Shown: positions 48,079 through 56,280, counted from the first letter of the stretch. The stretch is 64,000 nucleotides of DNA from Macrostomum lignano (GCA_002269645.1 NIVC01001549.1:1-64000); one strand, 5' to 3'. The notes: generated from the letters alone by a model not told the origin. Program-made: numbers and translations.

Positions 48079-51000
48079 TTAGAAGGCCTGAGGCGTTGGA
48101 GGTGTCAAGCAATATACCTGAAAAATTAGATGGCAAGTATCTGCAAGCGTGTTGACCAGAGTTAAAGCAGTTGGACAGGACAAAATTTTGGAGGTTCGGA
48201 GCGGAAGGTCGGACACCGGATTCAGTACAAGGACCACTGTAGCATAGCATGGACTCAAGGATCGTACAATTTTTGGAGGCCGATTCCCCGGAAAAAATAA
48301 ATAGCTACACTGCGGAGATCGCGGAAAAAATCTTTTTTTCATCATAAAATCAATGATTGCATTTGATCTGGGGCAGTGAAGATTACCATTCCTTTGATTT
48401 AGCATGTACATAAAAATGTTTTCCTGTTGTATTATATATAGTTGTGTCACGAACTTTCATTTTCATATTGTATTATTTTCTGCTATTTCGTAAACCCAAG
48501 CCAAAGTTATAAATAATCACAATCAAGTTATTTTTTGTTTTATTCCTCTTTAATCAAGTATTCTTGTAAAGAATTTTGCATGAAGGTACTCTGAAGCCAT
48601 GTATTGTAGGCACAGCGAGTTCCATTTAAATACATATTAATTAGTAGCTATTCCTAGACCTGTCTACATAATTAAATGTAGACAATATTCTACCAATAAC
48701 ATATTTCACATTGTTAACCTAGAAAGCAATCAATTTTTAAGCCAAGGCGTAGCTTAAGTCTAAGAGCACCTGCACGCAAAAATTTCATTACAAAGTAGAA
48801 CTTTATTCACGAAGGATTAACACTTTTAAAAAAACTTTCACTACACAACTATATAGTATACAATTCAGAGTAACATACTGTAGATGCTAAATTAAAATAA
48901 TGCCAATCCTTGATCTTTTCCTATCTCCGCAGTGTATTTTCCCAGGAAAATTTGCCCCCTAAAGAATTACATGATCTTTAATTGAGTTTTACTTCTTGTT
49001 GTTATACTACAGACGTGATCCTTGTTCATACATGCGCAACCTCCAAATTTCGGTCGGCCATGCGACTTAGTTTTAACAAAAATGCGACGTAGTTTTTGGC
49101 CAAAAATGCGACTTACATGTAAAAAAACCCGAAAGCAAAATTAACGCAACTTTGGGTAAACGGCAGGAGTAACTATGACTGTCTTATAAAGCCAAAATGC
49201 CTCGTCAGCTACTTAGTACTACTACTCTGTGTTTTTTCGGGTTGGCATTTTTGCGACTTCCTTGGTTGGCCACCAAATCGGTCGGCCGGATCGGCCGACT
49301 CGGCCGACTGTTGCGCATGTATGTCCTTGTTGCACCATCGGTACGTCGAAACTCTGAAGATTTATTTCCTTTAAAAACTATCTTAAAAATAGCTAATCGT
49401 TTTAAATTTTTAATTCTTGCACCGAGCAGTCGGGATTTTAGTGTCGGGAGTCTGGGGGGGGGGTTCTAAAACTAGGCTCACCTTATCCGACTCCTTGAGC
49501 TCCATCGAGTCCTCCGGAAGAGTGACAACAAAGCGATGATTTTTGACGGACTCAGCCGATCCAGTTTTGTCCTCGACTTGCAATCGGAAGATGCCGATGC
49601 ACACGATTTCCAGTTGCAACAGCGACTGCATGAACAGATCTTTCCAGCTGCACTTTGCCTGAAATTGAAGACAACAGCTTGCTTTCGAAGTCCAAGCAAA
49701 AGTCTAAAGGAGCGTATACTTGGTCTAGCCCCTAAGCCTCGGGGAGAGGTAGTCGACTGGAGTGCCCCATTTCCGTTGGGTCTCCCTGGCAGGGTATCAG
49801 CTTTGGGCGGAAACCTTCCCTTCTTGCAGGTAGGGCTTACTTAGCACAGTGGCAGCTCAAGCTACAACTAGCGCGGTCATCTTCGAAACATAAGGCAGCT
49901 CGAGCATTACCCTAGAAATTACCGAACTCATCCAAACCAGAAAGCTAAACACGTCAATCAAAGTCTAACCTGCGCTTGAAAGATGCCAGAGAGAGGTGGT
50001 TTTGACAATTCCAGCAGCTGAATTTGACTCCGAATCTTGTAGCGACAACCATTGAATCTGTGCTCATTGCAGTCCTCCTTGGGCTGTTCCTGGTTGTCCG
50101 GAGACATGAAGTGGAAGCCCTGCTCATTGAGATTCACCTCCAGATTGTCCGAGTCCACTGTGGTGACCACCGTGCGCAGGAAGTTTAGTGCAGCGCCGTT
50201 AAAGTAGATCTGGGAATTTTTATAGGTTCAAAAAAAGAATAACTCAATGGCAGTAAGTATTTATGAGCCCCCTGCCGCTCCTGCAATTTTACTGTCGCCC
50301 CTGAGTAGCGCTCAATCGCACTCAGGTACATCGCATTATCATCAAGGCCCATATTTCATAAAATTTGGAATCACCAGCTATCAACGCTTTTTACCGTTGT
50401 GACAATGGAGCCAAGCAAGCTGTGAAAGAATGTGCGCCCTGTGGCAAACGCTTGAGTCATGTAGGGCTCTTCAACGTCGTCATCATCGTCCTGATCCAGA
50501 TAATCGATCGAGTCCTCCGTGTTGAGCTCAGTAATGATGTGAATGACGTCCCCTAGACGGTGTCCAGTCTCCGGATGACGCATAGTTTTGATGTTGAGGG
50601 TGCAGAGCACCGTCTCGCGATCAACTTGAGCGTCCAACTGTAGCGAGTTGGCCTTTGGCGACAGGATCACGCAGCTGTCCACATACTCGACGTTGACGGC
50701 CTTGAGATTGGCTCGATTCAGCGGAGAGCCCTGCAAGCCGATTGATTTTTTGAGTTCAGATGAAGATTGAAAGTTCTGTACTTACCGAGCAACTTTAGTG
50801 ACACGTTAATAACCGAATACTCCTAAATTTAATAAACAGTGCACAATGGTAGTCATTGCCCGATTGTTTATTGCATTTACTAACATAAATTTAACATCGC
50901 TCGTATCTAATAACTAATTTCACTGTAATTCCGTTGAAATTCTCAAAACTTACATTGAGAACGTAGATGTTAGGAAAATTCTGAATGATGCTCCACTCAT

Positions 51001-54000: not shown

Positions 54001-56280
54001 GATAGTCAACTTTGCTGAACGTTTCAAACAAATAAGCTAATTTTTTACTTACCAGAGCAACAACAACAAACAGAATGATGAAGAATTTCCCCAGAATAGT
54101 CCTCGGGGAAATGTCGCCATATCCAACAGTGCTCATGGTGATCAACAGGAAGTAGAAGCAGTCGTGGAAGGAGATAAACCCGGCAGAAGTGAGACCCTCC
54201 TCCAGCCAGAAGTCGCCAACTCCTTCGATCTGCGTTTTTCAAGGTTGGTTGTTATCAGACAGACAGACAGACAGACAGACAGACAGACAGACAGACAGAC
54301 AGACAGACAGACAGACAGACAGACAGACAGACAGACAGACAGACAGACAGACAGACAGACAGACAGACAGACAGACAGACAGACAGACAGACAGACAGAC
54401 AGACAGACAGACAGACAGACAGACAGACAGACAGACAGACAGACAGACAGACAGACAGACAGACAGACAGACAGACAGACAGACAGACAGACAGACAGAA
54501 TAAACTTCAGAAAACTCTTACCAACTGAAAGAAGCCAGCGCTAATTAGCCACACAGAGATGATCTGAATGAGCAGATTGAACAGTCGGATGTACTTTTCG
54601 CCGCGAATAATGCTGCAGTAGATCAGCGTGTTCACAATGAACCGCAGGCCCACAAGCCTGGCGTATTGAAACGCTGAAAGAATTTCAAAACAACAAAATC
54701 GCCTCACGACTTATATTTCTTAATTATGAATCATTTATCGAGAACAAAATGGTATAACATACCAAGCAAGTGCCGATTCAAAATGTACATGATTAGCGAC
54801 GGTAGCAAGGTCACGTGATCAGCCATGGTGTCCATCGTGAGCCAGAAACTGAGCGTCGAGTTTGAGGCCACTAGCTAAAATGTGGAGCAGTTTCGGCTTA
54901 GTTTGAGTTGCCAAAAGCAACTGCAGGCATTCAGTGATGGAAGCAACATCTTACCCGAATAACGAATACCACAGCGTAGAAAATGTTGATGCCAAAATCG
55001 GCATGCACGATTGGCGCTTGGCTGGCTGTAAAGCAACTCAGAAAGTTCCGCTTACTCGGGATCTGATCGTCGTAGAAGTAGTAGTCGAGACGCACATAGA
55101 GCACGAACGATGTGACCACGCAGAACGAGTAGATTATTAGCTGAGGATTCCAAATTTGGTTACGCATGCTGTTGAGATAGCTTATCCACAAATAAATGCA
55201 GACGGATATGTACGCAGGCAGTGCTATACGGTTACACAGGGTGAATCCTACGACACGAACGGGTAAAATGAAAAGATCAGATGCATCACCGTTTGAGGAC
55301 GTCCTTTACGTAGTGCGCTGCAAGCCACTTGACATTTGGTTAAACATAAAATGTCAAAACACGTTGGCTGACTTAATTTTAAATATAATCAATAGTAACT
55401 GATTACACCTGCCCTAATGAGCAGATGTGCAGCCGATAGATGTGCGCGATGTACCGCTGTTCAGTCCATGGACTGGCGGGTCGCCACACACACCCTCAAT
55501 TACCCCTGGCAACCATCTGGCAACCATTTTACAGCTGGATGAACTGAAGAAATGCAGAATTAGGTGTCTTGCTCAATGACACAAATTGCTCCGAGTGGGG
55601 TCGAGAATCGGACCTCCGGACTTTTCAGTCGCGAGTCCAAAGCTCTAACCACTCCAAGGCTACGAACCCTTAATTTTTGTTTTAATTTTGAAACATCTAT
55701 AATATTGAAGCTGCCACATGTTCTACAGACAGACAGACAATGAAAAAAGCAATAATAAAAGTTGTTGGATAACCATAAAACATATTTTTGTACCTCAGAA
55801 TGGCTCAGCAATTATGGCAGATTAAGGATTGACATAACCAGGAATCTTCATGATCTTCTGTTATATTGCTATAGGAGTTGGTCGTTATGAAGACAGATAA
55901 AATACACTAAATGGTAAGGCAGTATAGAGCATGAAAGCAATACTTATTGAAGACCTAAACGCTAGATTTCTTACCATAATCTTGCCAAATATATTGGCAC
56001 CCTTCATCAGTGCCTTGCAGTGCAGATGAATCTGCGTGGTACATTTTCCTTTCTGCGACACCTTCAGAGCCCTCTGCCTGGCGTCCTGCTCGTCCTCCTT
56101 GGTTCTTGTGACCGGCGCGCATGCGAACTTGGCCAGAGCAATGACAATCAGGAAGGCAAAGTAGGTGGCCAAAGTCACTCCGATGATGATCCTCCATTCG
56201 GTCTGGTCGCACAGCTTGCTGGCTGTTGTGGGCGCATCGGTGGCTGCCGAGCTATTCGAAGGTGCTGCTGTGCCAGACAT
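48079..56280 (-). CDS. KCNMA1: Slo1/BK-type large-conductance Ca2+-activated K+ channel alpha subunit, divergent, about 1115 aa
   Basis: complement(join(48079..48117,49482..49658,49970..50209,50395..50730,50954..51281,51503..51569,51676..51974,52312..52550,52710..53030,53434..53593,53672..53785,53865..53959,54053..54229,54522..54673,54763..54874,54955..55140,55975..56280)) = 3348 nt, phases consistent. S0 helix, pore [10 protein letters not shown]6 PEISE, RCK1 HVVVIG, RCK2 HVVVC..MPLRAS, Ca bowl LDQDDDDD. The 51974 acceptor is weak; the symbol indicates family. Confidence 0.93.
49027..49323. mobile_element. hAT-type MITE (297 bp) in the last Slo intron
   Basis: Perfect 14-bp TIRs CATACATGCGCAAC / GTTGCGCATGTATG; exact 8-bp TSD TCCTTGTT at 49019-26 and 49324-31; subterminal CGGCCGA and AAAAATGCGAC repeats. 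Confidence 0.9.
54256..54498. repeat. (AGAC)n microsatellite = (TCTG)n on the Slo sense strand
   Basis: Direct inspection. Confidence 0.98.
55404..55663 (-). mobile_element. tRNA-derived CORE-like SINE, copy 2 (Slo intron 1)
   Basis: Reverse complement shares CACTCGGAGCAATTTGTGTC, GCAAGACACCT, CAGCTGTAAAATGG, GGGGTAATTGAGG and the GGGCAGGTGTA 3' end with copy 1. Confidence 0.75.

Follow-up and report, generated by a model that had tools for sequence, protein, structure and literature searches.

What becomes of voltage gating in a BK-type channel whose S4 segment has lost most of its charges? The question is raised by a 64,000-nucleotide stretch of the Macrostomum lignano genome (GCA_002269645.1 NIVC01001549.1:1-64000; this whole stretch is called the window), on the minus strand of which a sequence-only reading had noticed a BK-type channel with intact Ca2+ sensors and a largely discharged S4, and had predicted weak or altered voltage dependence. 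We found that the gene encodes a Slo1/BK-type alpha subunit with the full BK architecture, comprising S0, the S1-S4 domain, a TVGYGD pore, the E321/E324 ring and RCK1 plus RCK2, and that it is transcribed, as represented by a public RNA-sequencing (RNA-seq) model, and under purifying selection. From the analysis described below, we consider it probable that the product is a K+-selective, Ca2+-gated channel with reduced gating charge.

The assignment to the BK type made by the sequence-only reading was borne out by profile, domain and fold comparisons. HMMER searches against all PDB chains gave E = 1e-162 for Aplysia BK and 1e-145 to 1e-150 for human and Drosophila Slo1, with Slo2 at 1e-32 and MthK at 1e-10; the bit scores were about 500 to Slo1 versus about 120 to Slo2. 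Six BK/RCK/ion-channel domains were found by Pfam (Ion_trans, Ion_trans_2, BK_channel_a, Slo-like_RCK twice, and Slowpoke_C). An AlphaFold2 model, with a mean predicted local distance difference test score (pLDDT) of 73 and a predicted template modelling score (pTM) of 0.62, contained helices for S0 (residues 29-53), S1, S2, S3, S4 (204-220, pLDDT about 85), S5, the pore helix and S6. All of its 50 best fold matches in the PDB were Slo1, with template modelling scores (TM-scores) of about 0.64 over whole chains and of 0.86-0.90 against gating-ring crystal structures when normalised by the target. The extra N-terminal helix S0 was also represented by one of the seven transmembrane peaks in the hydropathy profile (residues 31-49) and by the HMMER alignment with Drosophila Slo, which begins at residue 11. 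The pore carries TVGYGD together with the conductance residues D292, E321 and E324, as well as F315, and the tandem RCK1-RCK2 gating ring was recovered both by Pfam (PF22614 in two stretches, PF03493 and PF21014) and by the fold matches.

The exon model was built by hand, GT-AG boundaries and consistent phases being required at each intron. A tblastn probe with human BK, used as a yardstick only and with its key residue numbers checked, returned an exon chain from about 55000 down to 49460. The resulting eukaryotic gene extends from 56280 to 48079 on the minus strand and has 17 exons, 1090 codons plus stop, and exclusively GT-AG introns. Its 1090-amino-acid product was identical, residue for residue, to PAA66571.1 (P0279, BOX15_Mlig020874g1, UniProt A0A267EYJ7, 'BK channel') and collinear, with 11 residue differences, with GenBank PAA88249.1 (P0001, BOX15_Mlig020874g2). 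Since the M. lignano GenBank models originate from a genome-guided RNA-seq transcriptome and not from ab initio prediction (PMC5730564), the splicing, including that of the S4 exon, is supported by transcripts. The span first proposed for the channel, 50395-54874, runs exactly from the start of exon 3 to the end of exon 14 and leaves S0, S1, S2 and the last three exons outside. Read-through of the donor at 49482 to a stop at about 49411 was replaced by a splice to a 39-nt last exon (48117-48079). An upstream acceptor for exon 2, which adds a second hydrophobic segment, and a start at ATG 55167, which would drop S0, were both rejected; donor 55975 and acceptor 55140 (phase 0) reproduce the public protein.

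The reading of S4 depends on its register, and here the gene structure and the alignments agreed. Exon 3 stops at 54763 after the first base of a codon that is completed in exon 4, from 54673 onwards; this split codon (G/CG) encodes Ala at the position of human G205. In human BK numbering, HMMER and MAFFT gave R207Q, R210 kept, R213G, I215R and E219N, leaving Q, R and G in place of the R207-R210-R213 triad. No gap occurred over residues 200-260, either in the HMMER alignments with Aplysia BK chains or in the MAFFT alignments of 16 and of 57 sequences, and the codons at 54671-54630 are those stated by the sequence-only reading. That reading had anchored S4 on a conserved phase-1 intron, and the anchor holds: an intron of phase 1 in codon 205 and one of phase 0 after codon 255 enclose an S4 exon of 50 codons in all six Slo genes mapped, which come from four phyla (the window-type gene, two M. 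lignano paralogues, a tardigrade slo-1, a nemertean paralogue and an oyster canonical Slo1; two of these were mapped from their longest isoforms). Nine intron positions are common to all six genes, and positions 780, 991 and 1048 to most of them; the introns flanking exon 2, at human BK positions 115 and 167 (both phase 0), are common to the window-type gene and the five others. A BLAST/tblastn register that sets GLRF on GLRF at the cost of an 8-residue gap was rejected, as HMMER and MAFFT were gapless and both the 50-codon S4 exon and its phases are constant. A different S4 exon would overturn the reading; the public RNA-seq-derived model uses the same exon, and there is no room for an alternative one in intron 3 (89 nt) or in intron 4, which is mostly a (CTGT)61 microsatellite.

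Outside S4, the S2 and S3 charges D153, R167 and D186 are kept in the MAFFT alignments, in agreement with the earlier claim; N172 in the S2-S3 turn is kept as well, and S3 shows E180T and a new Asp at 182. R210 alone is left of the S4 triad, yet the substitutions look compensated and S4 not simply 'largely discharged', the one at 213 favouring the resting sensor and those at 207, 180 and 219 the active one.

The Ca bowl, DQDDDDD, is intact at exactly the position at which it had been noticed (Table 1) and includes D892, D895 and D897. In RCK1, the MAFFT alignments agreed with the earlier reading in that D362, R514 and E535 are kept and D367 is Glu; with M513L as a further change, the ligand chemistry of the high-affinity site (E535, R514, D367E) is kept, although the affinity may differ. 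N449D is also found. Of the residues of the Mg2+ site (D99, N172, E374 and E399), N172 and E374 are kept and E399 is Thr, while Leu is aligned at D99 in a poorly aligning region. Thr at E399 and V-A at the G310-G311 hinge had been singled out previously; both residues had been read correctly, but neither is diagnostic, since canonical Slo1 proteins vary at both sites too, among them those of molluscs, cestodes, fish and M. lignano (MAFFT, 16 sequences). The C-linker is one residue longer than in canonical Slo1. The RCK2 loop preceding the Ca bowl, which had been described as almost absent, is shorter by about 33 residues than in human BK.

The window gene is one of three near-identical copies in M. 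lignano (Mlig020874/028490), the third of which, Mlig028490g1, differs from the window product at 21 residues; neither stops nor frameshifts were found in any of the three. In comparison with the duplicate locus (L001), the coding sequence showed 23 synonymous and 11 non-synonymous differences, corresponding to a ratio of non-synonymous to synonymous rates (dN/dS) of 0.14. Residues 1-620, which make up the membrane part and RCK1, differed by six synonymous and zero non-synonymous changes, and eight of the 11 replacements fell in residues 620-735, the disordered RCK1-RCK2 linker. Identity to L001 was 96-99.97% over the syntenic stretch, except for one segment of about 87%. This segment (window 52642-51472 versus L001 14260-15392) contains many indels and covers introns and exons of the linker; divergence of the duplicates is locally concentrated there.

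Two further paralogue groups, Mlig020881 (53% identity) and Mlig015491 (55%), have the same type of S4 (VFQFARINGLKYLVN and VFQFARLGGLKFLVN). The S4 type and TMSTVGYGD are kept in all 11 annotated copies of the three groups; position 215 is R in the window gene and K in both other groups, and position 182 is D or E in all three. The Ca bowl reads DQDDDDE in Mlig020881 and is degenerate (DQDDEME, with D367G) in Mlig015491. Within this clade, identity was 45-77% in S1-S4 and 55-66% in RCK1/RCK2, whereas between the clade and canonical Slo1 it was 10-20% in S4, 12-20% in S1, 50% in the pore and about 36% in the RCK domains. At 80 of 378 positions invariant in seven canonical Slo1 proteins, all three paralogue groups were fixed for another residue; the share of such switches was 38% in S1, 42% in S2, 30% in S3, about 20% in the RCK domains and lowest, 13%, in the pore. 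The S1-S4 domain was therefore rebuilt a single time, at the origin of the clade, the changes being R207Q, R213G, E219N and E180T with a new basic residue 215 and a new acidic residue 182, while R210, D153, R167 and D186 were retained. It has been conserved ever since, a history that marks a changed, not a lost, function.

M. lignano has six Slo1-type gene groups (P0040, P0147, P0272, P0002, P0003 and P0279), namely the trio Mlig020874/028490, Mlig020881, Mlig015491, the canonical P0040, Mlig032474 (S4 R-R-R) and Mlig033054 (R-R-H). Five of the six exist in two or three near-identical copies; for P0040 there are only two UniProt records. Most model animals have a single Slo1 gene, so that the family is greatly expanded here. 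P0040, with the S4 GLRSTRALRIL and thus the full R-R-R, is the canonical Slo1 elsewhere in the genome for which the sequence-only reading had recommended a search. It clusters with mollusc, arthropod and nematode Slo1, and the window clade lies outside that cluster, so that the window gene is not a one-to-one orthologue of KCNMA1/slowpoke. An exhaustive HMMER scan of 1.84 billion cluster representatives, with P0001 (99% identical to the window protein) as the query, left an empty gap below the M. lignano clade (1158 bits), the next match being a nemertean Tubulanus BK-like protein (XP_074641051; 530 bits, 37% identity), followed by arthropod Slo1 at 495 bits and an Owenia paralogue at 481 bits. 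In a neighbour-joining tree of 57 sequences and 920 trimmed columns, the only method being a distance method, the M. lignano clade had 100% bootstrap support and fell inside the Slo1/Slo3 type, with 87% against Slo2, outside the canonical Slo1 cluster. It grouped with a protein of the trematode Calicophoron at 36% bootstrap; this grouping, like the basal placement of the clade, may reflect long branches. Given the long branch and the distance method, the tree would accommodate, within the Slo1 type, either a Macrostomum-specific expansion or an older spiralian paralogue. The clade might belong, together with the nemertean and annelid proteins without R213, to an old spiralian paralogue lineage instead of being a Macrostomum invention.

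How unusual the S4 is was assessed in the 57-sequence MAFFT alignment. Among its 52 Slo1-type representatives, R210 was present in 50, R207 in 43 and R213 in 22; the representatives were taken at 50% identity, which over-weights divergent lineages and collapses canonical Slo1 to a few rows, so that these counts refer to lineages, not genes. The loss of R213, which is missing from 30 of the 52, is not exceptional, unlike that of the nearly invariant R210. The residues found at 213 in place of R were W (8), Y (6), G (4), H (4), I (2), N (2) and one each of L, S, K and Q, the K, in a sponge protein, retaining the positive charge. Proteins without R213 came from a nemertean, an annelid, a sea star, cnidarians, tardigrades, a trematode and M. 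lignano. P0121, P0123, P0141, P0127, P0129, P0046, P0134, P0136 and P0272 are among the divergent Slo1-type paralogues that keep R210 and replace R213, and a group of eight sequences from environmental or raw-read assemblies all have Trp at 213. Loss of both R207 and R213 was seen in the window's clade, in Calicophoron (N, S), in one tardigrade protein (S, N) and in one further clade (N, W), and the Ca bowls of these other double-loss proteins are degenerate. In this sample, a double S4 neutralisation combined with intact Ca2+ sites was unique to the window's clade, and R210 alone behaves as a family-wide feature of S4. In the literature, no paper was found that names Mlig020874, Mlig020881 or Mlig015491 or describes flatworm Slo1 paralogues, and the searched literature yielded no functional characterisation of other Slo1-type paralogues without R213. 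A 2012 survey of M. lignano ion channels lists only KCNMA1 and KCNU1, as best human matches, and the Mlig gene ids are absent from the supplementary tables of two M. lignano transcriptome papers.

The functional consequence can be approached through single mutants. According to gating currents of human BK, only R210Q and R213Q lower the gating charge (zQ), and R213Q shifts V0 to +394 mV; neutralising R207, E180, E219 or D186 shifts the charge-voltage (Q-V) relation to hyperpolarised voltages, and neutralising D133, D153 or R167 shifts it the opposite way (PMC9231616). In this 2022 work, D153, R167 and D186 no longer count as gating charges, so that their retention alone does not preserve voltage sensing (PMC9231616). 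Ionic currents indicate that neutralisation of R213 removes 0.30 e and that neutralisation of R207 or R210 stabilises the active state by 3-7 kcal/mol (PMC2151507). By cryo-electron microscopy of Aplysia BK, R196Q and R199Q lock the sensor in the active state and R202Q locks it at rest (PMC12218146). One rest-favouring change (213) together with three active-favouring ones (207, 180 and 219) would be expected to leave about half of the gating charge and a partly restored midpoint. In the mechanism that we propose, the channel would be K+-selective, probably of large conductance, and opened mainly by Ca2+ binding at the gating ring. Its voltage sensor would have about half of the usual gating charge, contributed by R210 alone. 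The loss of R213 by itself would lock the sensor at rest; the neutralisations at 207, 180 and 219, each of which should favour the activated sensor, would offset that loss. As a result, the voltage dependence would be shallower, with the sensor either keeping its midpoint within usable limits or leaning towards the active state.

Several points weigh against this mechanism. The effects of single mutants, measured in mammalian or Aplysia BK, need not add up, and about a third of the otherwise invariant S1-S3 positions differ here. Charge movement could be restored by the conserved basic residue at 215 and the acidic one at 182. Three changes, D367E, M513L and N449D, involve the Ca2+ sites, so that the Ca2+ affinity may be different, and the degenerate Ca bowl (DQDDEME) and D367G of Mlig015491 show that Ca2+ sensing is not uniformly kept in the clade.

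The residues at 215 and 182 also form the basis of a different explanation, in which R210, the basic 215 and the acidic 182 make up a re-registered, equally effective charge system and voltage dependence is near-normal and BK-like. The charges are kept in all three paralogue groups, S1-S4 is as constrained as the remainder of the protein, and other proteins without R213 have a basic residue just downstream (R215/K216 in a tardigrade, R216 in a cnidarian). Position 215, however, is off the i+3 register of the S4 arginines, most relatives without R213 have no substitute charge, and the electric field of BK reportedly concentrates at the R210-R213 pair (PMC9231616); we regard near-normal voltage dependence as rather unlikely. 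It is improbable, in our view, that the protein serves instead as a modulatory or heteromeric partner that tunes the voltage range of the canonical Slo1 of M. lignano or of its other Slo1-type paralogues. Such a role would fit the presence of six Slo1-type gene groups and the finding that the pore and RCK interfaces are the parts best conserved relative to canonical Slo1, but the protein contains everything that a homotetramer requires, and identity to canonical Slo1 is only about 31-33%.

A switch of ligand, by which the channel would be a Slo3 or Slo2 analogue that responds chiefly to pH, Na+ or Cl- and retains its Ca-bowl-like sequence for structural reasons alone, seems to us very improbable. 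Slo3 and Slo2 demonstrate that a change of ligand is possible on the Slo scaffold, and M513L, D367E and N449D alter the neighbourhood of the Ca2+ sites; nevertheless D892, D895, D897, E535 and R514 are present, unlike in the aligned Slo3 and Slo2, S0 is present, unlike in Slo2, and the clade did not group with vertebrate Slo3 and was separated from Slo2 at the bootstrap value given above. The idea of an artefact or a dying gene, whether a mis-spliced model, a wrong S4 exon or a pseudogenised duplicate, is close to refuted and hardly deserves credence. The DV1 assembly of M. lignano is highly redundant (PMC5730564), and BLAST alone allows the gapped GLRF-GLRF alignment, yet the independently built model equals the RNA-seq-derived public one, three copies lack stops and frameshifts with the dN/dS already mentioned, exon length and intron phase agree across six genes and four phyla, introns 3 and 4 are too full for another S4 exon, and the S4 pattern is kept in paralogues at 53-55% identity.

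Compared with known Slo1/BK channels (KCNMA1, Drosophila slowpoke and Aplysia Slo1; PDB 5tj6, 6v22 and 7pxe), the proposed channel with reduced gating charge has the same S0-S6, TVGYGD, D292/E321/E324, F315, tandem RCK domains, Ca bowl, E535/R514 (with D367E), D153/R167/D186 and R210, and the same gene structure, with 12 introns common to most of the five other mapped Slo genes and nine to all five. It differs in an identity of only about 30-33%, in the loss of R207 and R213, in neutral residues at E219 and E180, in new charges at 215 and 182, in Thr at E399, in a C-linker longer by one residue and in the short loop before the Ca bowl, and it is not the orthologue, P0040 being separate. Of the changes studied in the engineered mutants R207Q, R210Q and R213Q of human BK and R196Q, R199Q and R202Q of Aplysia BK (PDB 9di8, 9dit and 9dkf), R207Q itself and a neutral residue at 213 occur naturally here. 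In the flatworm channel, the active-locking change at 207 and the rest-locking change at 213 occur together with neutral E180 and E219 positions and many other changes, and its net behaviour is not readable from single mutants. The paralogues without R213 (Tubulanus, Owenia, Acanthaster, cnidarians, tardigrades, Mlig033054 and Calicophoron) likewise keep R210, with G, I, L, H, Y, W, N, S or Q at 213, but most of them retain R207. Tubulanus XP_074641051 has G at 213 as well, and a one-residue insertion next to the E374 equivalent, as in the M. lignano protein.

Slo3 (KCNU1), which is vertebrate-only (PMC5337896), is likewise a Slo1-derived paralogue with changed gating, although its pattern is the opposite: its S4 arginines are kept, and its Ca bowl and RCK1 Ca2+ ligands are lost. 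The window protein does not have this pattern. Slo2 (KCNT1/2, SLO-2) likewise has an S4 with few charges and RCK-driven gating, but it has neither S0 nor a Ca bowl and forms a separate clade, so that the window protein is not of this type either. MthK represents the conceptual end-point of a K+ pore gated purely by RCK domains and Ca2+; it differs in being prokaryotic, without an S0-S4 domain, and in having a single RCK per subunit plus soluble copies.

The coordinates of the gene and of selected repeats are given in Table 1.

Table 1. Parts of the Slo1/BK-type gene and examples of minisatellites in the window (positions counted from its first letter).
Feature	Coordinates	Strand	Basis
Whole coding span, Slo1/BK-type gene	48079..56280	-	GT-AG model, PAA66571.1 identity, HMMER, Pfam
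Exon 1: start codon, short N-terminus with NSS sequon, S0 (~29-53), S0-S1 linker	55975..56280	-	hydropathy, AlphaFold2, HMMER
Exon 2: S1 and S2, D153 and R167 equivalents	54955..55140	-	alignments
Exon 3: S2-S3 turn (N172 kept), S3 (E180T, new D182, D186 kept); phase-1 end	54763..54874	-	model, alignments
Intron 3, 89 nt, conserved phase 1, splits the human G205-equivalent codon	54674..54762	-	model, exon-structure comparison
Exon 4: S4, S4-S5 linker, S5	54522..54673	-	sequence, gapless alignments, AlphaFold2 helix 204-220
S4 motif	54673-54630	-	read from sequence
S4 codon Q (R207)	54668-54666	-	sequence
S4 codon R (R210)	54659-54657	-	sequence
S4 codon G (R213)	54650-54648	-	sequence
S4 codon R (I215)	54644-54642	-	sequence
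S4 codon N (E219)	54632-54630	-	sequence
(CTGT)61 microsatellite, most of intron 4	54256..54499	-	Tandem Repeats Finder
Exon 5: turret, pore helix, filter, D292 equivalent, first half of S6 (V-A at G310-G311)	54053..54229	-	
Selectivity filter TVGYGD	54130-54113	-	sequence, alignment
Exons 6-10: S6 end, C-linker, RCK1	52312..53959	-	alignments, Pfam PF22614 and PF03493
Exons 11-12: poorly conserved RCK1-RCK2 linker	51503..51899	-	duplicate-copy differences, pLDDT ~30 over 637-731
Exons 13-16: RCK2 with Ca bowl and short preceding loop	49482..51281	-	alignments, Pfam PF22614 and PF21014
Ca bowl DQDDDDD	50496-50476	-	sequence, alignments
Exon 17: last 12 codons and stop	48079..48117	-	comparison with P0001; splice sites, frame checked
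Minisatellite example	803-2312		
Minisatellite example	5605-6871		
Minisatellite example	12038-13234		
Minisatellite example	15844-17204		
Minisatellite example	31216-32673		
Minisatellite example	33648-34950		
Minisatellite example	40490-41407		
Minisatellite example	41719-42955		
Minisatellite example	57350-57996		
Minisatellite example	61247-61913		

Elsewhere in the window, exons of a gene resembling cyclic GMP/cyclic AMP-dependent protein kinases lie at 17296-29608 on the plus strand, with Pfam cNMP_binding at 17296-17500 and 21400-21579, and one open reading frame (ORF) of this region ends with an AGC-kinase-like tail. A gene with cNMP_binding and Pkinase also comes next at the paralogous channel locus L003 (Mlig015491g1), which suggests a block duplication that included both the channel gene and the kinase gene. 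Convergent with the channel gene is an ABCB-type transporter gene (37566-45360, plus strand) with ABC_membrane and ABC_tran exons, and such a neighbour, with a 1309-amino-acid product, is also annotated beside the duplicate copy in L001. Minisatellites with units of 12-58 bp are exceptionally dense, 41 rows of Tandem Repeats Finder scoring at least 400 (overlapping rows represent the same array); they yield long spurious ORFs and strong local GC and AT skews, and their density agrees with the reported content of about 15% simple and tandem repeats in the M. lignano genome. Intron 1 of the channel gene holds an element of about 270 bp (55420-55690, minus strand) with a tRNA-like start (ggttcgtagcc...ggtccgattctcgacc), which looks like an insertion of the short interspersed nuclear element (SINE) type; neither ARAGORN nor Rfam made a call on it, and the Rfam scan of the window found nothing. 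The single ARAGORN call in the window, a 'tRNA-Pyl' at 61308-61388 on the minus strand, is almost certainly a false positive, as it lies inside the 29-bp minisatellite at 61247-61913.

Which residues carry the gating charge of BK has been debated for two decades, between R213 with S2/S3 residues (PMC2151507) and R210 with R213 only (PMC9231616). The gene family analysed here is a natural test, as it has kept R210 and both Ca2+ sites with R207 and R213 removed, and purifying selection has maintained its S4 changes across two or more rounds of duplication. The occurrence of R210 in 50 of 52 representatives as against 22 of 52 for R213, in a sample that over-represents divergent lineages, is a testable statement on the role of the sensor. 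We put forward, tentatively, that Slo1-derived channels may repeatedly, and most completely here, have turned the BK sensor by compensated neutralisation into a largely voltage-insensitive coupling module, and so become big-conductance, purely Ca2+-gated channels; if this were true, R210, and not R213, would be the one S4 charge indispensable to the Slo1 scaffold. In practice, only a modest amount is at stake, since this is a channel of a laboratory flatworm and each single change is already covered by engineered mutants. Taken together, the gene is a lineage-specific variant of a known channel family, and it exemplifies a wider trend, apparently not described before, in which divergent Slo1-type channels lose R213 and keep R210.

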